Shown in pieces: positions 27,678 through 64,000 of a stretch of 64,000 bases of DNA. The position numbers and the translations under genes are program-made. Numbering within the stretch: position 1 is the first letter of the stretch; each line of letters begins with the position of its first letter. The DNA comes from Paramoeba atlantica (Eukaryota; Protista; Discosea): assembly GCA_977017575.1 (NCBI GenBank), contig CDRNVI010000039.1:62001-126000 (forward strand), written 5' to 3'. The notes under the pieces were generated by a model that saw only the letters and a list, made by a program, of their open reading frames with translations, did not search any database and was not told the origin of the DNA.

Positions 27678-27765
27678 CGTTTGTAAAAGATGAGTCTGGG
27701 GAGCGTCATATGCGCCCCCGGACTTATCTACATATTCTCTGCCTTATGAAGGCATGATAAAATAT

Positions 27766-39123: not shown

Positions 39124-39505
39124 GGGGAGGTGGCGGAGTGGCAAGAGCTCAAAGTTTGAAGCACATGGTGCTCAGACGGCGAGTTCAAACCCGCTCATCG
39201 CAATATTCCCGGCGGCCTCACTATAAGAGGCTGGGCTGATAACCGACTAGGCCCAGTACTCGGAGGACCGTCCCGGACCCTCCCCTCAGCGAACCAGCTC
39301 CCTTACCCGGCTTATACCTCTTGAGTAAGCCGTGTTGACGGACAGTTCGTCGACGCAGCGTGTTGGCAACAGCACGTTGGTGCCGCCTCGGAAAAGCGGA
39401 AACTGGTAGAGGACGTCGGCCTCGGAACTTCCAAATCTGTCTGTGAAGGGTCTGGCTTGCCAGTGACCATCCGGAGCAATCCGGAATGATTTGGATTTCT
39501 TTTTT
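39124..39505 (+). mobile_element. tRNA-derived SINE-like element, copy 1
   Basis: A box tggcggagtgg (39131-41), B-box-like gagttcaaacc (39181-91), about 290-nt body, T-rich end. Confidence 0.75.
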
Positions 39506-39509
39506 GTGT

Positions 39510-39937
39510 CAGACGATTTGTCATACGACACTATTGATGGTGTTCGTTATCTACGAAAAGCCCCTTCTTTTATGCAATGCAATGAGAAGGGGTCAGGTGT
39601 AGAATTTTACTCCAAAAAGGAGCAGCACCATGATAAGGCTTCCCAAGGAAACTTTCAAGTGGAATTGGGATTTGCCTATACGTATCACAAAGTACAAGGT
39701 ATCACCGTGAAGAACGGTGTTATTCTTGACTTGAATGATAAGGCGTGGCCAAAGAGACCGGAACTCGCCAAGCTCACAGTAGCAAAATCCAGGGCACAAT
39801 GCCTCGATGATATTCGAGTGCTCCCTGGCATGGGCACAGATCGCCCAGGAACACACCTGACTTCAGGTTATCATAGGCCTAAATTTCCGGCCATGGAAAA
39901 AGCAAATCGGCTTACCGATTTGACTTATCAATTCTAA
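39510..39937 (+). pseudogene. PIF1-like helicase C-terminal fragment (Helitron-type)
   Basis: VELGFAYTYHKVQGITV...VILDL...LTVAKSRA (helicase motifs V and VI). Confidence 0.8.
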
Positions 39938-40129
39938 GAAATTAGAATGAAACGATCTTCTTAGGAAGACCTCTCTAGGGGGAAGCACGCTTGATACCGG
40001 CCACAAGCAAGTGCAGAAGAAGTGAGAGTGACCCCAACGCTCAAGCGCCCTCTACCAAAAAAAAGAGTTCTCCATCATAGCTGCAGAATTATGCTTCGTC
40101 AAAATTGCTTTCGAATTATTTTTATCGAA

Positions 40130-40430
40130 ATTTCAGAAGCTTGTTTCCTTCAAAAGCACCCCCGCGCCAGCGGGTCTTCTCCCGCCGGGCGGGCCCTTCA
40201 AAAAAAAGATATAGATGCTTGGTCCCTTCAAAATTATATGCCACGAAGTAAAGCACCCCCCGCGCCAGCTGGTCTGCACCGTCTCGAAGGGCCCGCCGGG
40301 CGGGCCCTTCAAAAAAAAGATATCAGAAGCTTGTTTCCTTCAAAATTACATGTCACGAGGTAAAGCACCCCCCGCGGCAGCGAGTCTGCGCCCTCTCGAA
40401 GGCCCCTCCGGGCAGGCACTTCAAAAACAA
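40130..40430. repeat. About 115-bp tandem units with hairpin gaagggcccgcc-g-ggcgggcccttc plus A-run (also 33925-34056)
   Basis: Read directly. Confidence 0.8.
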
Positions 40431-40514
40431 GACTTCTACGTTCATGTATTGCTTTTTAAGTTGAATGTTTCTAGACTCATCTTGATTTCTTTGAAAACTT
40501 TCTTTGAATTTACT

Positions 40515-40860
40515 ATGGCCTCGGCGGAGAATCAATCAAAGGTAACGACATTTCCGACAAGGAAAGAGATACAAAGCGCAAAAGAGATGATTACTTAGAA
40601 TCTCTACACGTTTTGCGCTCTGCGAGCGAAGAGCGTGACGAGCGCTCAATCACAATAGAACACCTTCCCTCATCTACGGCTAAAGAAGACCTTACCAAGC
40701 ATTACCGCTTCGTATGGTGAAATCGATTGTATAACAATCGTATCAAAAAAGAGACTGGCGCACATGTGTTTTAGCACTACGGAAGAAGCGAAGCGCGCAT
40801 CGAGCGTTTACTTCAAAGGGAAAAAGAAGAGAAGCAGATACTTAAATTTCTGAATAAGTG
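40515..40860 (+). pseudogene. Frameshifted RRM-domain gene fragment
   Basis: Joining frames gives RDERSITIEHLPSSTAKEDLTKHY-ASYGEIDCITIVSKKRLAHMCFSTTEEAKRA (RNP2 and RNP1 spacing). Confidence 0.65.
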
Positions 40861-42685
40861 TGTAAGAAGACGTTTGGAAGTGAAAGTTGGTTTGAAATTT
40901 TGAAGTCATGATTCAACCCTCTGTAAGTATTTGTAACTTCGCATTTTCTAAACTCAAATAATACAATTGAAACTAAATTTGTTAAAAAAATGTTTACATT
41001 TACATAGCAGATCTACATTTGCAGTCATCACTTCTTCTATTTTTAGCCTGATCATTCAAGAAATATGCTTTTGATGACTCAATTAGTGCATACCCAACGT
41101 ACTGTCAGAAAAGCGTTCCCACATGGCATTAGCTGCACCCCTGGCGTAAACCAAATGAATCAAAACGAAGAAGTAACTACACGAGGTAAACCCCCCCCTT
41201 CAAAAGCCGGAGTGAATTCAAGGGCCTTTCAAAAAAAGAGGTCTCCACCCTGCTACGTTCAAAATCGTGCGAACCGAAGGAAAACACATGTGAGCGGAAA
41301 TATGCAAAAACAACCCTATTTTTGCCCAACTATCGGCCCTTTTTGGACCAAACCCAGAATTATCCCTCTGGTTTCTTTTACTCTCCTGTCAAATTTTTCT
41401 TTTCTAGGCGCTTCGTTAAACGCGGAGCTAGTTTTCAACGCGAAGAGCGCAGCATGAGTGACTTCTAAATTGAAATTTAGAAAATTTTAAATAGATTTTT
41501 TTTTTCTAAATTGAAAACAACCACCGCGTTTAACGAAGAGCCTAGAAAATTGCGGTGGTTGTATAACTACCGCTCTATCCTCGATTATTGAAAAAAAAGT
41601 GAACAAAAACAATGAAAATATAAAGAGGCACACAGTAATAAAAGAAAAAAATATAAAAGGGGGCTCCCGTGATCCAAAATTGAAAAAAAAATTGAAAAAA
41701 ATGGGGGGTCCATGGGGGGGATCCAGGGGGGGGATCCAGGGGGGGGTGTCATGGTCGAGCGAACTTTTTTTTTTTATACTCCAAATTTTCCACTGGCCCT
41801 TGAAGAATTCCCACGCCTGGCGATTCGTTAATGGATGTTTGTATAATAAAAATAAAAACAAAGCTCTTTTTTTTCACTACGCTGTAAATCATTGGGATTG
41901 CTTGCATTGGTTAAATCAGACTTCGTTTTCGAGCAAATTTTTTCGAAAAAATTAGTTTTCGAACAAAACCGCAGAAAGGGTAGCCGGGGTCTTGGCGCGC
42001 ATTTTCCACACCCCTACCCGGGGGTGCCCCCCCCGCGTATCCGCAGGATGAGTCCGCCGAGTTCGAACATTTTCGGAAAAAAAAATTTGAAAAAAAATTC
42101 AACTTGGCGAAAAAAATGGCAAAAAAAATATTTTTCAAAAATCGTTTCCCCTATTGTTAATTATAGTTTGGGATCTATACTAGGTTTCTCCGCAGGCGTT
42201 TTCGCAAGGTATCCCTTCTTAGAACCGTGGTGCGCCCCTCAAAATGACCCATTTTTGACCACAAAAGGTGAAAAAGTATTTTTCGGACCTAAAGGGGCAT
42301 TTTTGTGTCGAAAGAATGGTATGGTTGGAGTCGCATTATCTACCCAATACGTTCGGTAGGCTTCCATTCATACCTACGAGTGATTTACCACGCGCAAATG
42401 TCGGATTTAGTGCTCTGAGAGCAAAAATACCCAAAAATGACACCATTTTTACCCTAAAATCGGCTATTTTTGGCTATAATCTTTACGTTTTCCAGGCTAA
42501 TTTTTCTGTTTTAAGCTCTTCGTTAAACGCGGTGGTAGTTTTCAACGCGAAGAGCGCAGCATGAATGACTTCTAATTCGAAAACAACCACCGCGTTTAAC
42601 GAAGAGCCTAAAAAAGAAAATTATAACCGTAAGTGTATATAAGCGAGGAGGGGTTAACGAATGCTTCATAAATGAGGGCAACGCC

Positions 42686-42931
42686 GTGAAATGCACCATA
42701 TGCGATGCTGAAGTTCATTCAAGAAGACTATCCCGGCATTTAACTTCAAAAAGGCATGTGAAAACCACGTCACCCGACGCTCTTCAAACTTTAAACGAAA
42801 CTGAGAGAGACATTGTGGAAGAAAATGTTTCATGCAACGAAGAACTGAGAATGGCAAAGTTCCGAAGCATTCATTTAAGACAGGTTGGGATTTTGGACTT
42901 TCGCTTCCTCGCCTTGGTCTTCCAAACCTGA
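42686..42931 (+). pseudogene. C2H2 (matrin-like) zinc-finger fragment; second copy at 52997-53242
   Basis: CTICDAEVHSRRLSRHLTSKRH. Confidence 0.5.
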
Positions 42932-44564
42932 GCATTGTAGAGCGATCTGCCAATTCTTTTTTAGGCTCTTCGTTATACGCGGTGTTTGCTTTCAACTTAG
43001 AAGTCACTCATGATGCGCGCTTCGCGTTGAAACAACAGGAGAAACCGGAAGGATTGGAGCTAAAAATATCCGACTGTCAGGTAATAATGGGGTCAATTTT
43101 AGCTATTTTTGCTCTCAGAGCACTAAATCCGACATTTGCGCCTGAGAAATTACTCGTAGGCATGAATGAAAGCCTACCGAACGTATTGGGTGGAGAATAC
43201 AACTCCAATCACACCTTTCTTTCCACACTAAAAGGCCCCTTGGAGTCCGAAAAATACTTTTTCACCTTTTTTAGTCAAAAATGGGCCAATTTCGCTGGCA
43301 TACCACGTCTTGAAGAAGGGATATCTGGCGAAAACAACGGTGTAGATGGCTAGTATAGGTCCCTCCTCTGAAAGTGTTAACATATTAGAAAAAGCATCCT
43401 CCAAAAAAAAAAATCCTCCACCAACGACCACCAAAGCATCCTCCACAAACGACCCCGCAGCTGTAGCCACATCTTTGATAGCCCACGAAAGGAATCCTAT
43501 TTCAATTGAAGAAGCCGAAGCTGAAGAAGTTCTTTTGCTCGACAGGCACAATGTTGAAGATCTCGAGCATGAAATGGTAGAAAGCGTGTCGTGTCTTCTA
43601 GATAAAGGTAAAATAAGATCTCCTAACAAAGCCAATATTGAAATTCGCCCCGAGCGGTTGTTGTTGGTTCCGCAGGAAAAACGGCATCTCTACCTTTTCA
43701 GGCGCTTGCCTTCATGCCATAAGGGAGATACCATTTTTCCTGTGGAAACTGCCGCACCTACACTGTTGGTATCTCCCTCTTGCCCTTTACCCTGGGTTAC
43801 ATAGTAAAAACATGTTCCCTAGGACTCCTTACAGCTTTCCACGCGAGGAAGTCGTCGTCGCTGCGGCAAAAAGGCAGAAGGCTCCGACTTCTGATTTTTG
43901 CCTTGCGCCTCCTCCTTCCTCTACGGTCTTGCGTATCCCAAACTTCAAGTTGAAAAAAGCATGCGTGGCAAATCGGTCTTTGCAAATCGCTTCCGAAGGA
44001 GGTCTCGAGGCGTCCAAAAGGTGCGTTTTTCTTTCCTAAAACTATCTATTCATGGTGCTGCCTTTGGTTCTTTGCGAAAAAAGCATTTTCCGAAATTGTT
44101 TTTGTCGGGCCAAATTTCGGGCGAAATATCGGGCGAAATTTCGGGCCAAATTTTATTAATACTGGGTAGCGAGGGAGTAGTATCTCCCTCAATTCTGAAA
44201 ATGTACCTCCCGGGAGTCGAACCTGCGATCACAAGATCATGAAGGTCAGGTGTTACCCACTGGAATCCCTGGGTTCGAGTCCCATGACCCATTTAAGCAC
44301 CGTGATTTGTGCCCAAATCGAGGATAGGTCGGGGGGTAGACCCTTTTCTCACCCTGTTGGATCCGCCCTACCCCGGACAGCATAAAGAAGGGAGAGGCAG
44401 AGGTTGTAAACAACCACCGCAATAACACATTTTACTCGGAGGCGGCTATATCCCAAGAAAACATTAGACTACTGGCCTCTGAAAGTGTTAACATATTAGA
44501 AAAAGCATCATCCACCAACGACCCCGCAGCTGCAGCCACATCTTTGATATCCAAATCATCATTT

Positions 44565-44928
44565 CCAAATCATTCCCGATTGCTCCGGATGGTCACTGGC
44601 AAGCCAGACCCTTCACAGACAGATTTAGAAGTTCCGAGGCCGACGTCCTCTACCAGTTTCCGCTTTTCCGAGGCGGCACCAACGTGCTGTTGCCAACACG
44701 CTGCGTCGACGAACTGTACGTCAACACGGCTTACTCAAGAGGTATAAGCCGGGTAAGGGAGCTGGTTCCCTGAGGGGAGGGTCCGGGACGGTCCTCCGAG
44801 TACTGGGCCTAGTCGGTTATCAGCCCAGCCTCTTAGAGTGAGGCCGCCGGGAATATTGCGATGAGCGGGTTTGAACTCGCCGTCTGAGCACCATGTGCTT
44901 CAAACTTTGAATTCTTGCCACTCCGCCA
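44565..44928 (-). mobile_element. tRNA-derived SINE-like element, copy 2 (duplicate at 54876-55239)
   Basis: Reverse complement of 39131-39494. Confidence 0.75.
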
Positions 44929-45438
44929 AACCCCAACGCCAAAAAGGCGCATTACCATGATAAGGCAACCAAAGGAAACTTTCAAGTGGAATTGGGATTT
45001 TCCTATACGTATCACAGACCCGGTGTTTACCAACAACGGGGAAAACGAGCGATTTGATGAAGCAATTCGTCCTATGAAGTCTCTTTTCGAAGATCACTGG
45101 CAGAGCTTGTGTCAGCTATTCACTCAGGAGTCCTCCAGCCTCCATAGCTCGCAGGCGAAAATTATTATTCACTTAGAATACCGTGAAAGAGTTTTAATTA
45201 ATTTCAAACGTATGTCACCTCTGTATTCTGAAACCCCCGACGGTTTGCCTGTATTTTGGGATGCGCGTACTGATGGAATGCAGTTCGAGGTTGGGCTAGT
45301 ACGTTGGATGCACACATCGCGTGATTCAGTGAATGTCGAGGAAATTGAACAAATTGATAGTGACAGTGGGAGTGACGAGAATGTTGCGCAATTAGGTTTA
45401 GTTCGAACTAACGCTCCTTGGTCGGTGAAACAATTAGT

Positions 45439-46354
45439 ATGCGACGCGGTCGACTTTCTAATGAGTTCGGATTCAAGGTTTCTGCGGATGCGCAAAGGTA
45501 CTACCAGGGAGAGACACATTGGACGAACATTTGTGTTCGTATCAAGGATCTCTTTCTTTCTTGCAGCGATCGAGTTTCCTATCAGACGGTCCGTATTTGG
45601 TGGCGAACTAGGAAAGAGTACGGATTACAAGCGCTACAACCTGCAACTTCAAAAAACTCCCGTCCTAGCATACTAGCCTCCTATCGAGATCTAATCACTG
45701 ATCTGGTAAACGAGTTTTTTATGTACGGTGTTCCTGTGAGCAAGTGTCTTCTTTGGGTTGTCCTCTGTGAAATCGTTGAACAACCCAATGTAGAGGAACA
45801 ATGGAAAAATTCAGTCCAAAAAATAAGTGATGCAGTTCAAAAACCGAAAACTTTAACTGATGCAGAGGAAGGAATTTTTGTTCCATCGTATCCAACCTTT
45901 TCTATTTGGCTACGAAAACTAGACATCAAATTAAAAAGTGCAAAATCAACCATGAAATGCGCATATCCTGAAAATATTGATGAACTCGGAAAGGATATGC
46001 TCCTTCGGGCGTGTCACTACTTAAGAAATGAGTGGAACGGAAAGGTCTTTGCTTCTCTTCTTGTTAATATGGACGAAACGGGAATCGCTTACAACTGTCT
46101 GGCTGAACGCACACTTTCCTTCAGGGAGCAGCGGCCCGGGAACATAGCGCTGGGGGATAAGCGAAGTGCAACATTTTGGGGCAACGCTCGATGGTTCAAT
46201 GCTCCCCCCTTTTGTCATTTGGAATGGCAAAGATAATTATCACGGAGCGCATGTACGGACTTGCACAAGCACAGTTCAGTACCAAACATTGAACCACTAT
46301 GTTTCAACAGGTTCCCTTATGGAATATATTCGAGAAATTCTGCGTCCTTATTAG
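45439..46354 (+). pseudogene. pogo/Tigger-like transposase, 5' part (duplicate at 55750-56665)
   Basis: HTH-like region, then LVNMDETGI...TLDGSMLPPFVIWNGK (frameshifted). Confidence 0.82.
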
Positions 46355-46758
46355 GTTGCATAAGTTGCTTCGTTACACCTAGAAAGCAATGAGCCGCTTA
46401 GATTAAAAACACTAACCACACAACTGTTTAACATATCTCAAATTTAATGTTTGTTTTAATGAGTCCTCGCATAATGATGAGTCTTTTCATTACAATAAAC
46501 CAGGAAATGGAACCACCAACGCCCCTAGAGTTCAACGTAAATTGAAGGTATCAACTACTTAAGCGCTAAAATAAAACAATACAACTAACATATAAATATG
46601 AACATAAAACTTATAACCTTATATATCTACAATAAATATTAAATATAGTAATAAGAATAAAAACAATCTGACAGAAAAAACATGAATAAGAACTGCTCGC
46701 CCTGTCCGGGCTACAAAATCGCTACTCAAAATTTGAAATTAGGGGGGGGGGAATATAT

Positions 46759-48000
46759 TTAACAAGATTTCAAATACCATTGGTCACGTGAAACGCGTTC
46801 TGTAGAATGCTTTATTTTTGTTTGTGGGCTTCGCAGCTTTGGTTTAATTTCACTTTTCCCGTCTATATTTGTCTGAGCCTTTTGGTTCTTGTTGTTTCGT
46901 TGAAGTTTTAGACGTTCTGGATCTTCGCTTCGCGTTCGTTTCGGAATATTATTCATCACGTCGTTTTTAGATGATTCCTTTGTTTTTACTTTGCTGTCAC
47001 GTTTAGTTTGAAATTTTTCTTTTGGAGGATATTTTTCTTTTGGAGGATTGGGGTTCCTCTTTCCTGCTGGTTGTTTGTCAATACCCCCACGGGTGCTAAT
47101 TAGTCTCTTCCCTATCACATTTCCGGCGGATCGCTTATAAGTGACGGCGTTGGTGTGATCAAGTGTTCCTGCTTCCTTGGAAAGCCAATCCGCTATTTCA
47201 TTATGGGGGTTCCCCTCGTGGGCGCGAACTTTTACGCAAAACAGATTTTTCGATCCTGATTCAATTTTGATACAAATGTTGCACAGCTTTCGTAGGATTT
47301 CTGGATTTTGAAAGCCACTAAACCCTATCAATCTATTGCGGTGCCTGTGGATGTGAAAAAATTCGGTCAAAGTCAAGCATTATTTCGCACTTTTAGAAAT
47401 AATAAAAAGTATCTCCGAAGGAAGTTAGGAGTGGCTGCATGTGGCATGTACGACTCCGACACAAACGATCGGTGCAGACCCAGTGATCTCCTTTCAGGAC
47501 GCAAATGAAAGTTTCATGCCTCTTGCTACAGGTGACGCTCTGGAAAACAAATTTGTGGCCTTTCAACCACTCGATAATATCATTTTCGGGGGCGCGGGCG
47601 AGCACACTATAGCTAATACTATCTGTACACTCGGAATCGGAGCAAAACGAGCAATCCATCGAGAGTAGTGCAGATATATGCGAAAAATACCCTAAAAAAG
47701 ACTTTGCAAGTAAAATATGATCATATGAGAATACTATGCTTTTTTCGTGAAATAATGCTTGACTTTCACCAAAAATTCCCATATGTAATGCGAATCTGTG
47801 TGTACAACGATGTCTGTTCCATAATCTTGGGAAAATTGAAGTGCCTCAATCACCGCATAAAGTTCAACCGCTGTACTTTCAATTGTACTTTCAATATCTT
47901 CCTGGGGCTTTTTGCTTACCATGACTTGGTCAAAACCTTGTCCCAAAATATAAAACCCAGACCCATCTACAGATACACCTTTCTTTGTGGATTTGATAAG
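46759..48000 (-). pseudogene. Retroelement RNase H fragment interrupted by a Merlin-like insertion (duplicate at +10311)
   Basis: AVELYAVIEAL...VHTDSHYIWEF|FHIHRHRNRLIG...KVRAHEGNPHNEIAD is contiguous once 47365-47778 is removed. Confidence 0.85.
47365..47770 (-). mobile_element. Merlin/IS1595-like non-autonomous element, 406 bp, TIRs of about 24 bp starting GG, 8-bp TSD AAAAATTC (duplicate at 57676-58081)
   Basis: ggtcaaagtcaagcattatttc / gaaataatgcttgactttcacc; TSD at 47357-64 and 47771-78; residual IIEWLK...C...HWVC...LCRSR zinc-ribbon-like ORF. Confidence 0.8.
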
Positions 48001-48101
48001 TACGGGTTATGCTACCCCAACGCTTCTCTCTATGTTAATACCGACCGGTTTTCTACTATTCATAAAGTACAACGAGCAAAACTGGTGGGACATACTGGTG
48101 T

Positions 48102-49082
48102 ATGATTCGTCATTCTTCAGACTTTCGGGAACATATTCAATGGAAACAACGTAGCAACGCTAGATTACCTTCCCCAAGTGAAGCTTGTGTTAAAGATCTT
48201 GGCATTACTATTGAACAAGCATTGGTTTACGCCATGGACCGCGAGCATTGGTTCAGAATTACAGAACAACTTCCTGACAACCCTGAACCAGCTGCAACCT
48301 ATATAAAATCTGGCACGCAAAAGTGGAGAACCGCCGTCACAAGAGCCAAGAAGACTAAAGACCTACGCGAGTTACAGTATATTGAAGAGTCAACGGATCC
48401 TTTCCCTAACTTTAAAGCTATGCAGACATACAGGTATACGGATGCTTCTATTAAGAGAATGGTTAATTCTCAGGAAATTCGAAGTGGCGCTGGTATTGTG
48501 GTTATACCAACAAAAAAAGATCCAATAAGATGTTCAATCCCACTGGAAGTTACAACAATTGAGAGAGCAGAACTGCAATCCTTTTATTTAGCTCTCAACA
48601 AATTGCCAGAAAATTCATGCGCGTGCTTGTTTCACACAGATTCGCATTACGTTTGGGACTTATTTCACAATTTACGAAATAAACGGCGCATTGTGGGATA
48701 CACTGGGACAAAAAATGGCGATCTAATGTATGATGTGGACGCAAAGCTCAGGTTACTAAAATTCCATTCGTATAATATATATTTGTGCAAGGTAAAGGCG
48801 CACATTGGAAACAAATGGAATGAGGAGGCAGATGGTCTAGCACTTTTGGCATCACGAAAAGTGGCACGGGCTCCGACCCAAAAAAGGAGAAAAACAACTG
48901 CTCACTCGGAGGATAGTGAGAATTCACAACCGTTATGGTCTTTGAAAGCCTTACTCAAAAGGGGGTCCCTTGGAAATAAGCAAGCACGAGACATTCCATC
49001 ATCCAAGCGCGAAGCTGAGGCGGAAGGGGTATTTCGGGGGAAGGTTGCGAGAGCTGGCGGTAATAGGAAACCGTCTAAGTAG
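48102..49082 (+). pseudogene. 3' part of a non-LTR retrotransposon: RTE-like C-terminus followed by RNase H (duplicate at 58413-59393)
   Basis: AMDREHW, then YTDAS...GAGIV...RAELQ...FHTDSHY...KVKAHIGNKWNEEADGLA (D-E-D-D catalytic set). Confidence 0.85.
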
Positions 49083-49323
49083 GGAGAGGATTGATGGAAT
49101 TATTTCTTTGCCAACTTAGAATGCCTTGAGGATTATTCATAGGTTACCGGAAAAATATTGTTTGTTTGTACCGTATCAGACACATATAAACTCTGAACGT
49201 GGAAGCGATAGATGAAAGCTTTCAAGGTGTAAACGATAAGTTTTTCAACCGACTTTACGTCGGTCTTTTGGTCTTTTGGACACCTTTCTTCGTGAATAGA
49301 GAACCATCTGTATATATATGCAA

Positions 49324-50764: not shown

Positions 50765-51460
50765 TTCACCTTTACGCCGAGCGTATGGTTTGGGACCTCC
50801 TTCTACGAATTGTGACACTTTGGTGTTAGTGATTGCAGAAATTTTTGTTTCCCATCCAGATTTATTGAACTGTGTGTATGAAGGTCTTGGCTCCAACCGA
50901 TCGCGAAGTTGATCAACTTTCTTTGCCCATGACGTTCGACTTACTGGATAATACAGAATCTCTGCTGTACTTAAATTGAGATCTTCCGCACATAATTCGG
51001 AGACTGATCTATTTTTACTGGAATCTTCATCGCACCATGACATTATATTACAGAAAGCTGGTGAATGACGTACTAAATGCCTTAGTAAACTTGCTCGCTG
51101 ACATTTGGAGACTGTACTGAGATTGTTTTCTCCCTGATACAATGATTCAAGACGCATGCTTCGTTGACCGTCCCAGGATTTATGTACGCAGCACACTATT
51201 CGTCTCATTTTAGAAATTTCAGTGTCCATTTTCAGTAAATCGGAGGTCTAGATCTTCCACGTGCTACAACCATAGGAAATAACTGGCATAACTAAAGTTT
51301 GAAATATACGAGTGCGGCACAGAATTGAAAGAGGTGAGTTCCAAACTGGACGCAGCCTGTGCATAGTATACCACCCAAGTCTAATCCGGTCCCTTGGGGT
51401 TGATAAGTTATTTTCGGGGTTTATTGCATTACCTAAGTACCTATACTGTATGTCGTCACT
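50765..51460 (-). pseudogene. RTE-clade reverse transcriptase C-terminal fragment (duplicate at about 61077-61772)
   Basis: YRYLG...RIRLGWYTMHRLRPVWNSPLS...RIFQTLVMPVISYGCSTW; LLRHLVRH. Confidence 0.82.
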
Positions 51461-52011: not shown

Positions 52012-52240
52012 TTAACTGCGCTTCTTATTGCGGTGGTTGTAAAACTACCGCTCTACACTCGATTATTGAAAAAAAAGTGAACAAAAACAGTGAAAATATA
52101 AAGAGGCACACAGTAATATAATAGAAGAAAAAAATATAAAAGGGGGCTCCCGTGATCCAAAATTGAAAAAAAAATTGAAAAAAATGGGGGGTCCATGGGG
52201 GGGGGTCCAGGGGGGGGGTCCAGGGGGGGAGGGCATGGTC

Positions 52241-55200
52241 GAGCAAATTTTTTCGAAAAAATTAGTTTTCGAAAAAAAACCGCAGAAAGGGTAGCCGGGG
52301 TCTTGGCGCGCATTTTCCACCCCCCTACCCCGGGGTGACCCCCCCGCGTATCCGCAGGATGAGTCCGCCGAGTTCGAACATTTTCGGAAAAAAAAATTTG
52401 AAAAAAAATTCAACTTGGCGAAAAAAATGGCAAAAAAAATATTTTTCAAAAATCGTTTCCCCTATTGTTAATTATAGTTTGGGATCTATACTAGGTTTCT
52501 CCGCAGGCGTTTTCGCAAGGTATCCCTTCTTAGAACCGTGGTGCGCCCCTCAAAATGACCCATTTTTGACCACAAAAGGTGAAAAAGTATTTTTCGGACC
52601 TAAAGGGGCATTTTTGTGTCGAAAGAATGGTATGGTTGGAGTCGCATTATCTACCCAATACGTTCGGTAGGCTTCCATTCATACCTACGAGTGATTTACC
52701 ACGCGCAAATGTCGGATTTAGTGCCCTGAGAGCAAAAATACCCAAAAATGACACCATTTTTACCCTAAAATCGGCTATTTTTGGCTATAATCTTTACGTT
52801 TTCCAGGCTAATTTTTCTGTTTTAAGCTCTTCGTTAAACGCGGTGGTAGTTTTCAACGCGAAGAGCGCAGCATGAATGACTTCTAATTCGAAAACAACCA
52901 CCGCGTTTAACGAAGAGCCTAAAAAAGAAAATTATAACCGTAAGTGTATATAAGCGAGGAGGGGTTAACGAATGCTTCATAAATGAGGGCAACGCCGTGA
53001 AATGCACCATATGCGATGCTGAAGTTCATTCAAGAAGACTATCCCGGCATTTAACTTCAAAAAGGCATGTGAAAACCACGTCACCCGACGCTCTTCAAAC
53101 TTTAAACGAAACTGAGAGAGACATTGTGGAAGAAAATGTTTCATGCAACGAAGAACTGAGAATGGCAAAGTTCCGAAGCATTCATTTAAGACAGGTTGGG
53201 ATTTTGGACTTTCGCTTCCTCGCCTTGGTCTTCCAAACCTGAGCATTGTAGAGCGATCTGCCAATTCTTTTTTAGGCTCTTCGTTATACGCGGTGTTTGC
53301 TTTCAACTTAGAAGTCACTCATGATGCGCGCTTCGCGTTGAAACAACAGGAGAAACCGGAAGGATTGGAGCTAAAAATATCCGACTGTCAGGTAATAATG
53401 GGGTCAATTTTAGCTATTTTTGCTCTCAGAGCACTAAATCCGACATTTGCGCCTGAGAAATTACTCGTAGGCATGAATGAAAGCCTACCGAACGTATTGG
53501 GTGGAGAATACAACTCCAATCACACCTTTCTTTCCACACTAAAAGGCCCCTTGGAGTCCGAAAAATACTTTTTCACCTTTTTTAGTCAAAAATGGGCCAA
53601 TTTCGCTGGCATACCACGTCTTGAAGAAGGGATATCTGGCGAAAACAACGGTGTAGATGGCTAGTATAGGTCCCTCCTCTGAAAGTGTTAACATATTAGA
53701 AAAAGCATCCTCCAAAAAAAAAAATCCTCCACCAACGACCACCAAAGCATCCTCCACAAACGACCCCGCAGCTGTAGCCACATCTTTGATAGCCCACGAA
53801 AGGAATCCTATTTCAATTGAAGAAGCCGAAGCTGAAGAAGTTCTTTTGCTCGACAGGCACAATGTTGAAGATCTCGAGCATGAAATGGTAGAAAGCGTGT
53901 CGTGTCTTCTAGATAAAGGTAAAATAAGATCTCCTAACAAAGCCAATATTGAAATTCGCCCCGAGCGGTTGTTGTTGGTTCCGCAGGAAAAACGGCATCT
54001 CTACCTTTTCAGGCGCTTGCCTTCATGCCATAAGGGAGATACCATTTTTCCTGTGGAAACTGCCGCACCTACACTGTTGGTATCTCCCTCTTGCCCTTTA
54101 CCCTGGGTTACATAGTAAAAACATGTTCCCTAGGACTCCTTACAGCTTTCCACGCGAGGAAGTCGTCGTCGCTGCGGCAAAAAGGCAGAAGGCTCCGACT
54201 TCTGATTTTTGCCTTGCGCCTCCTCCTTCCTCTACGGTCTTGCGTATCCCAAACTTCAAGTTGAAAAAAGCATGCGTGGCAAATCGGTCTTTGCAAATCG
54301 CTTCCGAAGGAGGTCTCGAGGCGTCCAAAAGGTGCGTTTTTCTTTCCTAAAACTATCTATTCATGGTGCTGCCTTTGGTTCTTTGCGAAAAAAGCATTTT
54401 CCGAAATTGTTTTTGTCGGGCCAAATTTCGGGCGAAATATCGGGCGAAATTTCGGGCCAAATTTTATTAATACTGGGTAGCGAGGGAGTAGTATCTCCCT
54501 CAATTCTGAAAATGTACCTCCCGGGAGTCGAACCTGCGATCACAAGATCATGAAGGTCAGGTGTTACCCACTGGAATCCCTGGGTTCGAGTCCCATGACC
54601 CATTTAAGCACCGTGATTTGTGCCCAAATCGAGGATAGGTCGGGGGGTAGACCCTTTTCTCACCCTGTTGGATCCGCCCTACCCCGGACAGCATAAAGAA
54701 GGGAGAGGCAGAGGTTGTAAACAACCACCGCAATAACACATTTTACTCGGAGGCGGCTATATCCCAAGAAAACATTAGACTACTGGCCTCTGAAAGTGTT
54801 AACATATTAGAAAAAGCATCATCCACCAACGACCCCGCAGCTGCAGCCACATCTTTGATATCCAAATCATCATTTCCAAATCATTCCCGATTGCTCCGGA
54901 TGGTCACTGGCAAGCCAGACCCTTCACAGACAGATTTAGAAGTTCCGAGGCCGACGTCCTCTACCAGTTTCCGCTTTTCCGAGGCGGCACCAACGTGCTG
55001 TTGCCAACACGCTGCGTCGACGAACTGTACGTCAACACGGCTTACTCAAGAGGTATAAGCCGGGTAAGGGAGCTGGTTCCCTGAGGGGAGGGTCCGGGAC
55101 GGTCCTCCGAGTACTGGGCCTAGTCGGTTATCAGCCCAGCCTCTTAGAGTGAGGCCGCCGGGAATATTGCGATGAGCGGGTTTGAACTCGCCGTCTGAGC

Positions 55201-58200
55201 ACCATGTGCTTCAAACTTTGAATTCTTGCCACTCCGCCAAACCCCAACGCCAAAAAGGCGCATTACCATGATAAGGCAACCAAAGGAAACTTTCAAGTGG
55301 AATTGGGATTTTCCTATACGTATCACAGACCCGGTGTTTACCAACAACGGGGAAAACGAGCGATTTGATGAAGCAATTCGTCCTATGAAGTCTCTTTTCG
55401 AAGATCACTGGCAGAGCTTGTGTCAGCTATTCACTCAGGAGTCCTCCAGCCTCCATAGCTCGCAGGCGAAAATTATTATTCACTTAGAATACCGTGAAAG
55501 AGTTTTAATTAATTTCAAACGTATGTCACCTCTGTATTCTGAAACCCCCGACGGTTTGCCTGTATTTTGGGATGCGCGTACTGATGGAATGCAGTTCGAG
55601 GTTGGGCTAGTACGTTGGATGCACACATCGCGTGATTCAGTGAATGTCGAGGAAATTGAACAAATTGATAGTGACAGTGGGAGTGACGAGAATGTTGCGC
55701 AATTAGGTTTAGTTCGAACTAACGCTCCTTGGTCGGTGAAACAATTAGTATGCGACGCGGTCGACTTTCTAATGAGTTCGGATTCAAGGTTTCTGCGGAT
55801 GCGCAAAGGTACTACCAGGGAGAGACACATTGGACGAACATTTGTGTTCGTATCAAGGATCTCTTTCTTTCTTGCAGCGATCGAGTTTCCTATCAGACGG
55901 TCCGTATTTGGTGGCGAACTAGGAAAGAGTACGGATTACAAGCGCTACAACCTGCAACTTCAAAAAACTCCCGTCCTAGCATACTAGCCTCCTATCGAGA
56001 TCTAATCACTGATCTGGTAAACGAGTTTTTTATGTACGGTGTTCCTGTGAGCAAGTGTCTTCTTTGGGTTGTCCTCTGTGAAATCGTTGAACAACCCAAT
56101 GTAGAGGAACAATGGAAAAATTCAGTCCAAAAAATAAGTGATGCAGTTCAAAAACCGAAAACTTTAACTGATGCAGAGGAAGGAATTTTTGTTCCATCGT
56201 ATCCAACCTTTTCTATTTGGCTACGAAAACTAGACATCAAATTAAAAAGTGCAAAATCAACCATGAAATGCGCATATCCTGAAAATATTGATGAACTCGG
56301 AAAGGATATGCTCCTTCGGGCGTGTCACTACTTAAGAAATGAGTGGAACGGAAAGGTCTTTGCTTCTCTTCTTGTTAATATGGACGAAACGGGAATCGCT
56401 TACAACTGTCTGGCTGAACGCACACTTTCCTTCAGGGAGCAGCGGCCCGGGAACATAGCGCTGGGGGATAAGCGAAGTGCAACATTTTGGGGCAACGCTC
56501 GATGGTTCAATGCTCCCCCCTTTTGTCATTTGGAATGGCAAAGATAATTATCACGGAGCGCATGTACGGACTTGCACAAGCACAGTTCAGTACCAAACAT
56601 TGAACCACTATGTTTCAACAGGTTCCCTTATGGAATATATTCGAGAAATTCTGCGTCCTTATTAGGTTGCATAAGTTGCTTCGTTACACCTAGAAAGCAA
56701 TGAGCCGCTTAGATTAAAAACACTAACCACACAACTGTTTAACATATCTCAAATTTAATGTTTGTTTTAATGAGTCCTCGCATAATGATGAGTCTTTTCA
56801 TTACAATAAACCAGGAAATGGAACCACCAACGCCCCTAGAGTTCAACGTAAATTGAAGGTATCAACTACTTAAGCGCTAAAATAAAACAATACAACTAAC
56901 ATATAAATATGAACATAAAACTTATAACCTTATATATCTACAATAAATATTAAATATAGTAATAAGAATAAAAACAATCTGACAGAAAAAACATGAATAA
57001 GAACTGCTCGCCCTGTCCGGGCTACAAAATCGCTACTCAAAATTTGAAATTAGGGGGGGGGGAATATATTTAACAAGATTTCAAATACCATTGGTCACGT
57101 GAAACGCGTTCTGTAGAATGCTTTATTTTTGTTTGTGGGCTTCGCAGCTTTGGTTTAATTTCACTTTTCCCGTCTATATTTGTCTGAGCCTTTTGGTTCT
57201 TGTTGTTTCGTTGAAGTTTTAGACGTTCTGGATCTTCGCTTCGCGTTCGTTTCGGAATATTATTCATCACGTCGTTTTTAGATGATTCCTTTGTTTTTAC
57301 TTTGCTGTCACGTTTAGTTTGAAATTTTTCTTTTGGAGGATATTTTTCTTTTGGAGGATTGGGGTTCCTCTTTCCTGCTGGTTGTTTGTCAATACCCCCA
57401 CGGGTGCTAATTAGTCTCTTCCCTATCACATTTCCGGCGGATCGCTTATAAGTGACGGCGTTGGTGTGATCAAGTGTTCCTGCTTCCTTGGAAAGCCAAT
57501 CCGCTATTTCATTATGGGGGTTCCCCTCGTGGGCGCGAACTTTTACGCAAAACAGATTTTTCGATCCTGATTCAATTTTGATACAAATGTTGCACAGCTT
57601 TCGTAGGATTTCTGGATTTTGAAAGCCACTAAACCCTATCAATCTATTGCGGTGCCTGTGGATGTGAAAAAATTCGGTCAAAGTCAAGCATTATTTCGCA
57701 CTTTTAGAAATAATAAAAAGTATCTCCGAAGGAAGTTAGGAGTGGCTGCATGTGGCATGTACGACTCCGACACAAACGATCGGTGCAGACCCAGTGATCT
57801 CCTTTCAGGACGCAAATGAAAGTTTCATGCCTCTTGCTACAGGTGACGCTCTGGAAAACAAATTTGTGGCCTTTCAACCACTCGATAATATCATTTTCGG
57901 GGGCGCGGGCGAGCACACTATAGCTAATACTATCTGTACACTCGGAATCGGAGCAAAACGAGCAATCCATCGAGAGTAGTGCAGATATATGCGAAAAATA
58001 CCCTAAAAAAGACTTTGCAAGTAAAATATGATCATATGAGAATACTATGCTTTTTTCGTGAAATAATGCTTGACTTTCACCAAAAATTCCCATATGTAAT
58101 GCGAATCTGTGTGTACAACGATGTCTGTTCCATAATCTTGGGAAAATTGAAGTGCCTCAATCACCGCATAAAGTTCAACCGCTGTACTTTCAATTGTACT

Positions 58201-61200
58201 TTCAATATCTTCCTGGGGCTTTTTGCTTACCATGACTTGGTCAAAACCTTGTCCCAAAATATAAAACCCAGACCCATCTACAGATACACCTTTCTTTGTG
58301 GATTTGATAAGTACGGGTTATGCTACCCCAACGCTTCTCTCTATGTTAATACCGACCGGTTTTCTACTATTCATAAAGTACAACGAGCAAAACTGGTGGG
58401 ACATACTGGTGTATGATTCGTCATTCTTCAGACTTTCGGGAACATATTCAATGGAAACAACGTAGCAACGCTAGATTACCTTCCCCAAGTGAAGCTTGTG
58501 TTAAAGATCTTGGCATTACTATTGAACAAGCATTGGTTTACGCCATGGACCGCGAGCATTGGTTCAGAATTACAGAACAACTTCCTGACAACCCTGAACC
58601 AGCTGCAACCTATATAAAATCTGGCACGCAAAAGTGGAGAACCGCCGTCACAAGAGCCAAGAAGACTAAAGACCTACGCGAGTTACAGTATATTGAAGAG
58701 TCAACGGATCCTTTCCCTAACTTTAAAGCTATGCAGACATACAGGTATACGGATGCTTCTATTAAGAGAATGGTTAATTCTCAGGAAATTCGAAGTGGCG
58801 CTGGTATTGTGGTTATACCAACAAAAAAAGATCCAATAAGATGTTCAATCCCACTGGAAGTTACAACAATTGAGAGAGCAGAACTGCAATCCTTTTATTT
58901 AGCTCTCAACAAATTGCCAGAAAATTCATGCGCGTGCTTGTTTCACACAGATTCGCATTACGTTTGGGACTTATTTCACAATTTACGAAATAAACGGCGC
59001 ATTGTGGGATACACTGGGACAAAAAATGGCGATCTAATGTATGATGTGGACGCAAAGCTCAGGTTACTAAAATTCCATTCGTATAATATATATTTGTGCA
59101 AGGTAAAGGCGCACATTGGAAACAAATGGAATGAGGAGGCAGATGGTCTAGCACTTTTGGCATCACGAAAAGTGGCACGGGCTCCGACCCAAAAAAGGAG
59201 AAAAACAACTGCTCACTCGGAGGATAGTGAGAATTCACAACCGTTATGGTCTTTGAAAGCCTTACTCAAAAGGGGGTCCCTTGGAAATAAGCAAGCACGA
59301 GACATTCCATCATCCAAGCGCGAAGCTGAGGCGGAAGGGGTATTTCGGGGGAAGGTTGCGAGAGCTGGCGGTAATAGGAAACCGTCTAAGTAGGGAGAGG
59401 ATTGATGGAATTATTTCTTTGCCAACTTAGAATGCCTTGAGGATTATTCATAGGTTACCGGAAAAATATTGTTTGTTTGTACCGTATCAGACACATATAA
59501 ACTCTGAACGTGGAAGCGATAGATGAAAGCTTTCAAGGTGTAAACGATAAGTTTTTCAACCGACTTTACGTCGGTCTTTTGGTCTTTTGGACACCTTTCT
59601 TCGTGAATAGAGAACCATCTGTATATATATGCAATCCAGGCTAAAGTGGACGAGGGAGAAACTAAAGGCACCTTTGGAAAACCACCTCGAAACTGGAACG
59701 GTATCACCCGTTAAAGACCCTTTTGCCACATCAGAATGCTCTACAAATCGGGAGATACCGTTCCAGTTTCGAGGTGGCTTTCCAAAGGTGCCTTTAGTAT
59801 CTCCCTCGTCCACTTTAGCCTGGATTACATAGCCATCCGAACATGCTCCCTATGGCGCTTTACTGTTTCCCACGCGAGGAAGTCGTCGTCGCCGCGGCAA
59901 AAAGACAGAAGACTCCGCCTTCTGCCTTTTTGCCTTGCGCCTCCTCCTTCCTCTACGGCCTTGCGTGTCACACACTTCCGGGTAAATTCTGGACTATTTA
60001 GGTGTATTATCGGAACAAGGTGGAGAAATATCGAATGAAACCAAAGCGTATACACGTATATCAGGCCCCCAACTCTCAAAAAACGGTTTAGGAGTTGATT
60101 TGGGAAAAATATGTTTTTTCGCTTTGACCCATAAATTTTCAGTTCTTTTTTCAAAATATCAAAATTTGCTATGATCACCCTGGTGGGGAGGGGGGGGGGG
60201 CAGGAGATACCCATCGGAATTGTTGAAAAACTAGTGATCTTGTCACTCAATTCGATTCATACGTCTGCCTTTTTGCCTTGCGCCTCCTCCTTCCTCATCG
60301 GCCTTGCGTGTCACACACTTCCGGGTAAATTTTGGACTATTTAGGTGTATTATCGGCACAGGGTGGAGAAATATCGAATGAAACCAAAGCGTATAAACGT
60401 ATATCAGGCCCCAAACTCTCAAAAAACGGTTTAGGAGTTGATTTGGGAAAAATACTTTCGCTTTGACCCATAAATGTTTAGTTTTTGTTTGCAAAGTTTC
60501 AAAAATTGCTATGATCACCCTGGTGGGGAGAGGGGGGGGGGCAGGGGATACCCATCGGAATTGTTGAAAAACTAGTGACCTCGTCACTCAATTCGATTCA
60601 TACGTCTGCCTTTTTTCCTTGCACCTCCTCCTTCCTCATCGGCCTTGCGTGTCACACACTTCCGGGTAAATTTTGGACTATGTAGGTGTATTATCGGAAC
60701 AAGGTGGAGAAATATCGAATGAAATCAAAGAGTATACAGGTATAGAAGGCCCCAAACTCTCAAAAAACGGTTTAGGAGTTGATTTGGGAAAAATATGTTT
60801 TTTCGCTTTCACCCATAAATTTTTAGTTTTTTTTTGCAAAATTTCAAAACTTGCTATGATCACCCTGGTGGGGAGGTGGGGGGGACAGGGGGTACCAATC
60901 GTAATTGTTGAAAAACTAGTAATCTTGTCTCTAAATTCGATTCATACGTCTTTGTAAACATTTTTTTCGAAAACTCACCTGAAACGATATCGGGCATGAA
61001 ATCGGGCCACAAATCGGGCACGAAATCGGGCACGGCGAATTAACCTACGGTAGCGAGGGAGTAGTATCTCCCTCAATTCACCTTTACGCCGAGCGTATGG
61101 TTTGGGACCTCCTTCTACGAATTGTGACACTTTGGTGTTAGTGATTGCAGAAATTTTTGTTTCCCATCCAGATTTATTGAACTGTGTGTATGAAGGTCTT

Positions 61201-62460
61201 GGCTCCAACCGATCGCGAAGTTGATCAACTTTCTTTGCCCATGACGTTCGACTTACTGGATAATACAGAATCTCTGCTGTACTTAAATTGAGATCTTCCG
61301 CACATAATTCGGAGACTGATCTATTTTTACTGGAATCTTCATCGCACCATGACATTATATTACAGAAAGCTGGTGAATGACGTACTAAATGCCTTAGTAA
61401 ACTTGCTCGCTGACATTTGGAGACTGTACTGAGATTGTTTTCTCCCTGATACAATGATTCAAGACGCATGCTTCGTTGACCGTCCCAGGATTTATGTACG
61501 CAGCACACTATTCGTCTCATTTTAGAAATTTCAGTGTCCATTTTCAGTAAATCGGAGGTCTAGATCTTCCACGTGCTACAACCATAGGAAATAACTGGCA
61601 TAACTAAAGTTTGAAATATACGAGTGCGGCACAGAATTGAAAGAGGTGAGTTCCAAACTGGACGCAGCCTGTGCATAGTATACCACCCAAGTCTAATCCG
61701 GTCCCTTGGGGTTGATAAGTTATTTTCGGGGTTTATTGCATTACCTAAGTACCTATACTGTATGTCGTCACTTTTGTGTATTCTCGGAATCAACAAAGAC
61801 TCTCATATTGGAAAAGTGTCGTCATGGCGATGAATTTTATTGGATGCGAATTTTTTATGTTCCTGCTCGGTGCACCGGAAGGCTTCAACCGTGCGACGTC
61901 GGGGTTTTTAATCGACTCAAGCCCCAGATACGCTATCAACGAACACGTGCGATATTCAAGTATTGCAGAGAAAAGCGTTATCAAGGTGAGAGGGTAGGGG
62001 ATGCGAAGTCTCTTGGTGCCCGCATGTCAAAAGAGCGACTTCTAGATGCAGTTGCAAAAGCCTACGAGTGGATGTCTTCATCAAAGCAAGTAAAGGCCAC
62101 AGTCGCCGCTTGGGAGAAATGTGGTATTAACACTTCGACCTTGATTGACACCAACATTAATCAAGCATGTTCACGTCGCCATGAGCTATTCAATTTCGTT
62201 TCTTCTGAACCAGAGGAGGAAACCAATGATTCTGATTTATTTGAAGTGGAAGAAGAACTAGACGTTCAATCTTCGGTGGGCTTTTATTGCCCAACGGAAT
62301 CTGTTTCACCCAAGACGGGCTAATTAACTGCGCTTCTTATTGCGGTGGTTGTAAAACTACCGCTCTACACTCGATTATTGAAAAAAAAGTGAACAAAAAC
62401 AGTGAAAATATAAAGAGGCACACAGTAATATAATAGAAGAAAAAAATATAAAAGGGGCTC
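52241..62460. repeat. 10.3-kb tandem duplication, unit 2
   Basis: Near identical to unit 1, with a few substitutions (for example gtgctctgag versus gtgccctgag, and tcctctacgg versus tcctcatcgg). Confidence 0.97.
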
Positions 62461-62788
62461 CGGTGGTCCAAAACTGAAAAAAAAAATGAAAAAAATGGGG
62501 GGTCCATGGGGGGGTCCAGGGGGGGTCATGGTCGAGAATATGTTTTCGAAAAAATTAGATTTCGAAAAAAAACCGCAGAAAGGGTAGCCGGGGTCTTGGC
62601 GCGCATTTTCCACCCCCCTACCCGGGGGTGACACCCCCGCGTATCCGCAGGACGGGTCCGCCAAGTTCGGATTTTTTCGGAAAAAAAGTTTTGAAAAAAA
62701 ATTCAACTTGGCGACTTGATAACCCATTTTTGACTAAAAAAGGTGAAAAAGTATTTTTCGGACCTAAAGGGGCATTTTTGTGTCGAAA

Positions 62789-63172
62789 AAAAAAAAATAT
62801 CCAAATCATTCCCGATTGCTCCGGATGGTCACTGGCAAGCCAGACCCTTCACAGACAGATTTGGAAGTTCCGAGGCCGACGTCCTCTACCAGTTTCCGCT
62901 TTTCCGAGGCGGCACCAACGTGCTGTTGCCAACACGCTGCGTCGACGAACTGTCCGTCAACACGGCTTACTCAAGAGGTGTAAGACGGGTAAGGGAGCTG
63001 GTTCACTGAGGGGAGGGTCCGGGACGGTCCTCCGAGTACTGGGCCTAGTCGGTTATCAGCCCAGCCTCTTAGAGTGAGGCCGCCGGGAATATTGCGATGA
63101 GCGGGTTTGAACTCGCCGTCTGAGCACCATGTGCTTCAAACTTTGAATTCTTGCCACTCCGCCACCTCCGCC
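62789..63172 (-). mobile_element. tRNA-derived SINE-like element, full-length insertion with 9-bp TSD
   Basis: gtgtcgaaa at 62780-88 and 63173-81 inside a family A copy; A9 run on + (T-tail on the tRNA-sense strand). Confidence 0.88.
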
Positions 63173-63617
63173 GTGTCGAAAGAATGGTATGGTTGGAGTC
63201 GCATTCTCTACCCAATACGTTCGGTAGGCTTCCATTCATGCCTACGAGTGAGTTCCCAAGCGCAAATGTCGGATTTAGTGCTCTGAGAGCAAAAATACGC
63301 GAAAAAGACCCCATTTTTACCCGAAATTCGGCTATTTTTGGCTATAATCTTTCCGTTTTCCAGGCTGAGTTTTCTTTTTTAGGCTCTTCGTTAAACGGGG
63401 CGGTAGTTTTCAACGCGAAGAGCGCAGCATGAATGACTTCTAAGTTGAAAACAACCACCGCGTTTAACGAAGAGCCTAAAAAAGAATTGAAGTTAATCTC
63501 GTTTTCTGTCGGATCAAGTCGATCACCATCGACTTGGTCAGTGGGCACCACAGCGAGGCCTGCTCACAAGCACGATGAACAGACAGCATTGCCTCAGCCT
63601 TATCATAGACTTCGGCA

Positions 63618-63921
63618 AAAATCCAAAAAAAAAACCCAAATCATTCCGGATTGCTCCGGATGGTCACTGGCAAGCCAGACCCTTCACAGACAGATTTGGA
63701 AGTTTCGAGGCCGACGTCCTCTACCAGTTTCCGCTTGTCCAAGGCGGCACCAACGTGATGTTGCCAACACGCTGCGTCGACGAACTGTCCGTCAACACGG
63801 CTTACTCAAGAGGTGTAAGACGGGTAAGGGAGCTGGTTCACTGAGGGGAGGGTCCGGGACGGTCCTCCGAGTACTGGGCCTAGTCGGTTCTCAGCCCAGC
63901 CCTCAGAGTGAGGCCGCCTCT
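63618..63921 (-). mobile_element. 5'-truncated SINE-like copy with 12-bp TSD
   Basis: tagacttcggca at 63606-17 and 63922-33; tRNA head absent. Confidence 0.85.
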
Positions 63922-64000
63922 TAGACTTCGGCATTCGCATCACTATAATCCCCCACTCTTTTATTGAATCCACGGTTCCGGTGTTGGTTTCCCATGTTGC

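Follow-up and report, generated by a model that had tools for sequence, protein, structure and literature searches.

A young SINE family with a tRNA-Leu-like head and a hairpin-and-repeat tail in a kinetoplastid-like protist

What is the ~385-nt repeat of which several nearly identical copies lie in a 64,000-nucleotide stretch of contig CDRNVI010000039.1, and how did these copies come to be there? The stretch (assembly GCA_977017575.1, filed under Paramoeba atlantica; positions 62,001 to 126,000 of the forward strand) is hereafter called the window, and coordinates without a contig or locus name follow its own numbering. An initial annotation, made from the letters alone, had proposed a short interspersed element (SINE) with a tRNA-derived head and a T-rich tail, inserted by target-primed reverse transcription (TPRT). 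Here, we followed the repeat from the window into the whole genome (45.7 Mb, 248 contigs). We are confident, if not certain, that it is a non-coding retroposon of a kinetoplastid-like protist, which carries a tRNA-Leu-like head and is mobilised by a long interspersed element (LINE).

Window copies and evidence of insertion

Window copies were located by repeat finding and by direct reading of the letters, which together bore out one ~385-nt family at the five places first proposed. The bounds came out at 39124-39510 (+), 44564-44928 (-), 54875-55239 (-), 62785-63169 (-) and 63624-63901 (-), with a mutual identity of 96-98%. The positions thus stand, but the independence of the five copies does not. 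The copies at 44564 and 54875 are 100% identical, are spaced exactly 10,311 bp apart and lie inside a tandem segmental duplication (41929-50000 = 52239-60311, 99.9% identity), so that they represent one insertion counted twice and the window holds four independent copies. Besides the SINE copy, each arm of this duplication contains an element resembling LINE-W, a LINE described below, and arrays of a ~343-bp repeat. The copies and their target-site duplications (TSDs) are as follows:

39124..39510, + strand: SINE copy 1, full length; subfamily with the head start GGGGAGG
44564..44928, - strand: SINE copy 2, consensus positions 8-372, without TSD
54875..55239, - strand: duplicate of SINE copy 2, product of the 10,311-bp tandem segmental duplication
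62789..63172, - strand: SINE copy 4, full length, with a GGC leader at 63170-63172
~63172 to 63095, - strand: tRNA-Leu-like head of SINE copy 4; A box 63154-63164, B box 63104-63114
62780..62788, - strand: downstream TSD of SINE copy 4, TTTCGACAC in element sense
63173..63181, - strand: upstream TSD of SINE copy 4, the same 9-mer, which is single at paralogous empty sites
63618..63918, - strand: SINE copy 5, 5'-truncated at consensus position 88, with the tail T10 GGA T4
63606..63617, - strand: downstream 12-bp TSD of SINE copy 5, TGCCGAAGTCTA
63922..63933, - strand: upstream 12-bp TSD of SINE copy 5, TGCCGAAGTCTA

Copy 1 lacks a TSD, and both of its flanks match those of a copy on another contig (locus L004). 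Copy 2 adjoins the 5' side of the LINE-W-like element and ends in a slipped AATGATGATTTGGAT repeat without a T run, whereas the tail of copy 4 reads GATTTGGATA followed by a T run. Copy 5 shows three additional bases, AGA (63919-63921), at its 5' junction.

The site occupied by copy 4 is found uninterrupted in four paralogues, at 42270-42350, 34820-34900 and 35960-36040 and at a fourth place. In an alignment spanning the site in three of these paralogues, the occupied locus differed from them solely by the element and a second 9-mer, GTGTCGAAA. Four empty paralogous sites together with the extra 9-mer prove that the copy at 62789-63172 is an insertion, and they confirm the 9-bp TSD assigned to it at the outset, TTTCGACAC being present on both sides. 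The 12-bp TSD of the 5'-truncated copy was likewise recovered, with TGCCGAAGTCTA at 63606-63617 and 63922-63933.

The same signature was found in other copies. We took 57 copies with an intact 3' end from ~60 fetched loci and determined in each the longest string common to two 45-nt stretches, one upstream of the element and one following its tail, with mismatched flanks as control. A shared string of at least 8 nt was present in 56% of the 57 copies, as opposed to 4% when the flanks came from different copies, and the 31 clear TSDs measured 8-14 bp with a mode of 10. Truncations of the 5' end were observed at consensus positions 88, 122, 151, 228, 244, 259, 282 and 305, while the 3' end was intact in all; a tail-only insertion with an 11-bp duplication was also found. 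TSDs of variable length, 5' truncation and empty sites are what TPRT leaves behind, and the TSD statistics of these copies agree with the TPRT proposed in the initial annotation. Taken together, these results support the conclusion that the family is a SINE with a tRNA-derived head, moving by TPRT.

How large and how old is this family? A DNA search of the genome returned 489 first-look candidates, and the 40 that were scored were 95-100% identical. An exact pattern running from the D arm to the B box occurs at 206 genome places and a 27-mer covering the 3' hairpin (at most 2 mismatches) at 321, against none for either reversed control. Among 52 full-length copies, divergence from the consensus has a mean of 2.0% and a median of 1.6%. 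From the counts of heads and 3' ends and a divergence of ~2%, we estimate about 200-320 copies of a young family which, at ~385 nt and on many contigs, is short, non-coding, dispersed and present in high copy number; the element contains no match to a protein family. Since some copies lie within tandem arrays or duplicated blocks, copies outnumber separate insertion events. At C21:765705-781466 and C12:137276-163216, SINE copies are regularly spaced, at ~1995 bp and ~6485 bp respectively; they ride in larger tandem repeats, which inflates the copy count.

Copies duplicated along with their flanks, such as the pairs 44564/54875 and 39124/L004 and the tandem arrays elsewhere, would also be expected of an immobile family of structured non-coding RNA genes dispersed by segmental duplication. 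Most copies, by contrast, have unique flanks, TSDs and variable tails, and the documented empty site and the TSD statistics already contradict this explanation. The body does not favour it either: its folding barely beats shuffled sequences (minimum free energy z -1.84), which gives the 'structured body' of the initial annotation little backing, and the copies are too alike for a covariation test. Moreover, the Rfam search that had been suggested matched no known non-coding RNA family, whether at gathering thresholds on the whole window or at E values up to 10 on the element. We give such a gene family next to no probability, and retain the reading of a mobile SINE.

The tRNA-like head, the tail and candidate partner LINEs

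The element is composed of a leader, a 78-nt head, a ~270-nt unique body, a 6-bp hairpin and the tail. In the head, the A box TGGCGGAGTGG fits TRGCNNAGTGG at 11 of 11 positions, and the B-box-like GAGTTCAAACC is one base off the consensus. D arm and B box together span 60 nt, compared with 63 nt in host tRNA-Leu genes; this is the spacing of a tRNA with a long variable arm (class II). We then compared the head with 18 host tRNA genes by global alignment, scoring each alignment as a z value against shuffles. The head is identical to host tRNA-Leu(TAG), with anticodon UAG, at 58 of 78 positions (74%; z 6.4), whereas the other 17 tRNAs do not exceed z 3.8 (3.8 for Ser(CGA), 3.1 for Leu(CAA)); host tRNAs of differing isotype, aligned with one another, give a median z of 4.1. 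This comparison points to homology between the head and cellular tRNA-Leu(UAG).

The cloverleaf itself has decayed. Six of the seven acceptor pairs survive, together with a T stem, which is short, and a small hairpin at the place of the variable arm. The degenerate long-variable-arm tRNA seen in the head at first reading is thereby upheld as regards the boxes, the class-II spacing and the similarity to tRNA-Leu, but not as a cloverleaf that tRNA detectors would recognise. Nearly all full copies have a few bases between TSD and GGAGG, ending in R-G-Y. In this leader (A-R-R-G-Y), the G-Y completes the acceptor stem, and because leader variants track body haplotypes, the leader is heritable as part of the element. 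The two boxes and the terminal T run are consistent with transcription by RNA polymerase III (Pol III).

At the other extremity, the 6-bp stem is formed by self-complementary TCCGGA and capped by a GCAA loop; it is followed by AT, GATTTGGA, a T run (3-20 in the general form) and, optionally, GGA(T)n. Among the 29 copies with clean TSDs, the length of the first T run varies from 1 to 20 (median 8); in 18 of them, GGA units follow this run. The T-rich sense-strand tail with GGA-type slippage repeats was thus correctly recognised in the initial annotation. A multi-copy, coding-looking repeat at L016:948-1020 (-) and ten other genome places carries GTGATTTGGATTTGGA by chance and so mimics the SINE tail.

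The TSDs of these 29 copies provide information on priming. Their first base is T in 10, G in 9, A in 8 and C in 2, and 26 of them start by continuing the copy's own (T)nGGA tail register, over a mean of 2.0 nt. With TSDs permuted among copies, 46% were in register with a mean of 0.87 nt, and not one of 2000 permutations reached the observed values. Bases common to tail and TSD are the expected residue of a nicked DNA end pairing with the RNA tail; the data therefore support priming by microhomology to the T-run/GGA repeat tail, and not to a pure U tail. Priming on a U tail, as first suggested, agrees with the two window copies in which the primer strand ends in A, but not with the mixed first bases found genome-wide.

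Which enzyme might carry out this reaction? A reverse transcriptase (RT) search of the genome gave 1851 first-look candidates, with many open frames of 1100-2800 aa. LINE-H, located on contig C12, encodes APE, RT and RNase H in a single 1534-aa open reading frame (ORF). At its 3' end, the stop codon is followed by the hairpin CCGAT-GCAA-ATCGG, by CTTA and by TAGGA repeated four or five times, and three independent copies diverge directly past these repeats. LINE-W is represented in the window by the following features:

48066..49079, + strand: RNase H-bearing C-terminal ORF of LINE-W, 41% identical to the LINE-H C-terminus
49248..49285, + strand: LINE-W 3' terminus, with the hairpin ACCGAC/GTCGGT, then C TTTTGG T CTTTTGGA

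The terminus, which among LINE 3' ends of this kind lies closest to the SINE copies, is duplicated at 59559-59596. Up to the tail, the window LINE-W 3' end is 95.5% identical to that of locus L008, and the hairpin followed by C TTTTGGA (TTGGA)n ends at least six LINE-W copies, counting the one in the window. Judged from these sequences, LINE-H and LINE-W appear to have the same terminal design as the SINE, a hairpin followed by GGA-containing repeats, and their predicted APE-RT-RNase H organisation is of the ingi/I type, not of the RTE type. Pfam searches of 46 window ORFs (at least 120 aa, from 12 to 52 kb) identified the domains RVT_1, RNase H, DDE_3 and PIF1; neither an endonuclease/exonuclease/phosphatase domain nor an RTE-type ORF was among the results. 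The RTE partner initially proposed, with RTE-like fragments adjacent to the copies, is accordingly not borne out: RTE-clade LINEs have APE and RT only and a very short 3' untranslated region, whereas the candidate LINEs carry RNase H, and no APE or RTE ORF was found in the 12-52 kb interval. RTE elements may nonetheless exist elsewhere in the genome.

A LINE with the very same 3' end as the SINE was sought genome-wide with four patterns: the hairpin after a non-SINE base, the terminal 13-mer, the 27-mer and (GATTTGGA)2. Only SINE variants and one unrelated coding repeat were returned. A cluster of matches on contig C65 proved to be a nest of SINE copies. Another window LINE, at 25621-27674, was rejected as a look-alike, as it has 84-nt hairpin cassettes in its 3' untranslated region and no GGA tail. 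This LINE (+ strand) matches RVT_1 and, weakly, zf-RVT; its 3' untranslated region (27678-28040) contains two of the cassettes, which recur at 18621-19042.

Could the SINE then dispense with a specific partner? Any resident LINE RT, possibly an RTE-like one, might take a U-ended Pol III RNA by pairing of its tail with A-rich nicks, in a relaxed mode that recognises the tail only. Of all tail features, the T run is the most constant, the genome has more than 1000 RT matches in many families, and the SINE 3' sequence is absent from LINEs in the pattern searches. Yet the mixed first bases of the TSDs follow the GGA register, no RTE-type element was found near the copies, and the conserved GCAA hairpin before the tail mirrors the ends of LINE-H and LINE-W, although the GCAA loop itself is common to the SINE and LINE-H hairpins and is not in LINE-W. 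We consider recruitment of just any RT unlikely. A specific partnership with a LINE of the LINE-H/LINE-W type has, in our estimate, about an even chance of being correct; it would rest on design and not on sequence, because no LINE carries the terminal 13-mer or 27-mer of the SINE.

The LINE-like appearance of the SINE 3' end also raises the question of whether the whole element is a deletion derivative of a LINE and not a Pol III-derived SINE. Such an origin would have precedent, since the kinetoplastid short retroposons described so far, RIME, NARTc and SIDER, are all LINE-derived (PMC12278014, PMC4728078). The family resembles them in being short and non-autonomous, in TSD length and, presumably, in being moved by an ingi-type element. 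It differs in that they are LINEs shortened by internal deletion, with poly(A) and the 5' ends of LINEs, whereas the present element combines a tRNA-Leu-like head, in which A and B boxes occur, with a T-rich tail and lacks poly(A). In addition, when a profile of the whole SINE was run with nhmmer against ~340 kb of SINE-masked loci and the window, including LINE parts, only tiny SINE fragments were returned, and no homologous LINE segment was detected. Derivation from a LINE is therefore very improbable, and we keep to a SINE with a tRNA-derived head.

For such a SINE, the following cycle can be proposed. Directed by the internal A and B boxes, Pol III would transcribe a source copy and terminate within the T run. 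The RNA would then be bound by a resident APE-RT-RNase H LINE, as suggested by the look-alike design of the 3' ends. The LINE endonuclease would nick the target in a staggered manner, and the freed DNA end would pair over 1-7 nt with the tail repeat and prime reverse transcription, a step for which the microhomology and the 8-14-bp TSDs are observed evidence. Slippage of the RT on the UUUGGA repeat, to which the tail variants point, would produce tails of variable length.

Several observations weigh against this picture. The Rfam tRNA model RF00005 has no match in the element even at E values up to 10, and ARAGORN, run at its defaults, returns no prediction for the window or the heads; a cloverleaf appears only at half the normal threshold (-ps50), where it is called, weakly, as 'Phe', a call that we disregarded as an isotype assignment. 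Simple Pol III termination accords poorly with T runs as long as 20 and with GGA units past the T run, unless the RT slips, and both Pol III transcription and the RNA 3' end are deduced from sequence. The exact LINE-W hairpin is rare, with 8 genome places, and the genome pattern searches found no LINE with the terminal 13-mer or 27-mer. Finally, the ~60-copy sample was chosen through full-length matches, which biases its truncated fraction.

Head repeats and 5S rRNA fusions at the 5' junction

What becomes of the RT once it has copied the SINE RNA to its 5' end? In about 15% of full copies (L006, L016, L017, L023, L026, L028 and L087), the initial 16-24 nt of the copy, together with the leader, are found repeated in tandem one to three times ahead of it, and L083 has an inverted copy of the SINE head. 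At five genome loci, a complete 5S rRNA stands directly before the SINE leader, with scores of 76-99 bits over the full Rfam RF00001 model:

L021:1880-1998, L019:1884-2002 and L027:1888-2004, - strand: Rfam 5S matches of 5S-SINE fusions
C48:255178, C3:779797, C52:242581, C8:248023 and C8:282317: 5S-SINE junctions, the only five in the genome

Three junction variants occur, each matching a different SINE subfamily in leader and body haplotype, and all three keep just 2-3 T past the 5S. At L021, a 9-bp TSD, AAGGCGACC, encloses both 5S and SINE, and the start of the 5S is itself partly repeated. Smaller traces are also present: ~6 of 50 short copies bear 2-7 nt of the 5S 3' end ahead of the leader, and L080 has a 20-nt extra between its TSD, TGTTTCCTTC, and the leader, which ends in ...GCGCACCA (ACCA) and there resembles a mature tRNA with its CCA tail. 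The simplest reading of these products is that the RT, at the end of the SINE RNA, either begins again on that RNA or switches to a different small RNA. In the cycle proposed above, it would either copy the first 16-24 nt once more or continue on 5S rRNA, the products being observed and the process deduced from them.

The same junctions might be explained the other way round, the true master being a composite of 5S rRNA and tRNA-like SINE (SINE3-like), with the rare 5S-headed copies as source genes. The abundant short form would then start at the tRNA-type promoter, slightly within the 5S end and spacer, and inherit the leader. The five loci with a complete 5S abutting the leader and the one TSD round both parts would agree with this, as would the short-copy leaders, which match the junction and in ~6 of 50 cases add 5S bases, and the finding that every composite has the leader and body haplotype of a short-copy subfamily. 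On the other hand, the full 5S is found in only 5 of ~320 copies, and many leaders have unrelated extra bases. The junctions keep 2-3 T like the mature 5S end, and the T number differs between them, which is better explained by three separate joinings at the RNA level than by a single ancestral fusion; the ACCA-ended extra, in turn, suggests jumps to other small RNAs. A composite master thus seems rather doubtful, and we prefer template jumping from the SINE RNA.

Complete 5S copies joined by their 3' end to the 5' end of a retroposon, with one TSD round the whole as at L021, recall template-switch chimeras made by RTs elsewhere, namely the U6-L1 and 5S-containing chimeras of mammals and the end-to-end template jumping of R2. 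In the present family, unlike in those systems, the SINE part is always full length and has its leader, and tandem repeats of the first 16-24 nt occur too. As a wider interpretation, we put forward only tentatively that this is the first reported Pol III-type SINE of Kinetoplastea, coupled with a jump-prone LINE RT, and that the 5S-tRNA composites possibly serve as two-promoter source genes.

Known systems, host and neighbouring sequence

Where does the family stand among known SINEs? It is of the classical tRNA-derived kind with a LINE-like hairpin-and-repeat tail, and is ordinary mobile DNA. In 'stringent' SINE/LINE pairs, such as eel UnaSINE1/UnaL2 and the tortoise Pol III SINE/CR1, the SINE has a LINE-like 3' hairpin and a tail of short tandem repeats. 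The present family shares with them a tRNA-like head, a unique body, a 3' stem-loop with slippage repeats, TSDs, 5' truncation and, probably, dependence on a LINE enzyme. It differs from them in having only the 3' design in common with its candidate LINEs, in the long T run of its tail and in its kinetoplastid host. T-rich sense-strand 3' ends are known from the plant SINEs Au SINE, TS and p-SINE1, which resemble the family in their tRNA-related head and in an oligo-T or T-rich tail instead of poly(A), but belong to an unrelated lineage and have unrelated sequences.

The host assignment comes from the window itself, which encodes a bifunctional DHFR-TS and an Spt5-like protein, each in a single ORF. 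Among solved structures, the DHFR-TS is matched best by the enzyme of Trypanosoma cruzi, and the source is probably a free-living kinetoplastid. In trypanosomatids, a 2025 survey of 57 genomes recognised four clades of retroelements, ingi, CRE/SLACS, VIPER and TATE (PMC12278014), and the free-living relative Bodo saltans is credited with the same four clades only (PMC4728078). We found no report of a tRNA-derived SINE in kinetoplastids or Euglenozoa in the literature searched, which is no proof of absence from all literature; to that extent, the suggestion of the initial annotation that this is possibly the first tRNA-SINE of the group holds. Two metagenome scans, with the SINE head and with the SINE 3' end, returned no match.

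A young, abundant SINE with a tRNA promoter would indicate that Pol III-derived SINEs do arise in the kinetoplastid lineage, and its hundreds of near-identical insertions are possible markers for strain or population history. The family and its candidate LINEs may offer a natural LINE/SINE pair for the study of how ingi-type enzymes choose RNA through a hairpin and a repeat tail, and the head repeats and 5S fusions a readable record of template jumping by that LINE enzyme.

A further observation concerns the assembly. Contigs C137-C185 (loci L031-L060) and C108-C133 contain, in AT-rich DNA, many near-identical clusters of eukaryote-type tRNAs (Lys, Ser, Ile, Asp, Thr) as well as a recurrent AT-rich tRNA-Ser-like gene. 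None of the listed genome SINE matches falls there, and only one 3'-hairpin match does (C185). These contigs may come from another organism in the assembly.

Other mobile DNA is also present in the window. Beside SINE copy 1, at 38059-38418 (-) and 39467-39934 (+), lie PIF1-like helicase fragments (E 4e-10) with a weak SF1 helicase match, which may belong to a Helitron-like or other helicase-bearing repeat. The ORF at 13539-14225 (-) encodes a transposase domain of the DDE_3 family (E 4e-15) and is a remnant of a Tc1/mariner-type DNA transposon, a class that, to our knowledge, has been little reported in kinetoplastids.

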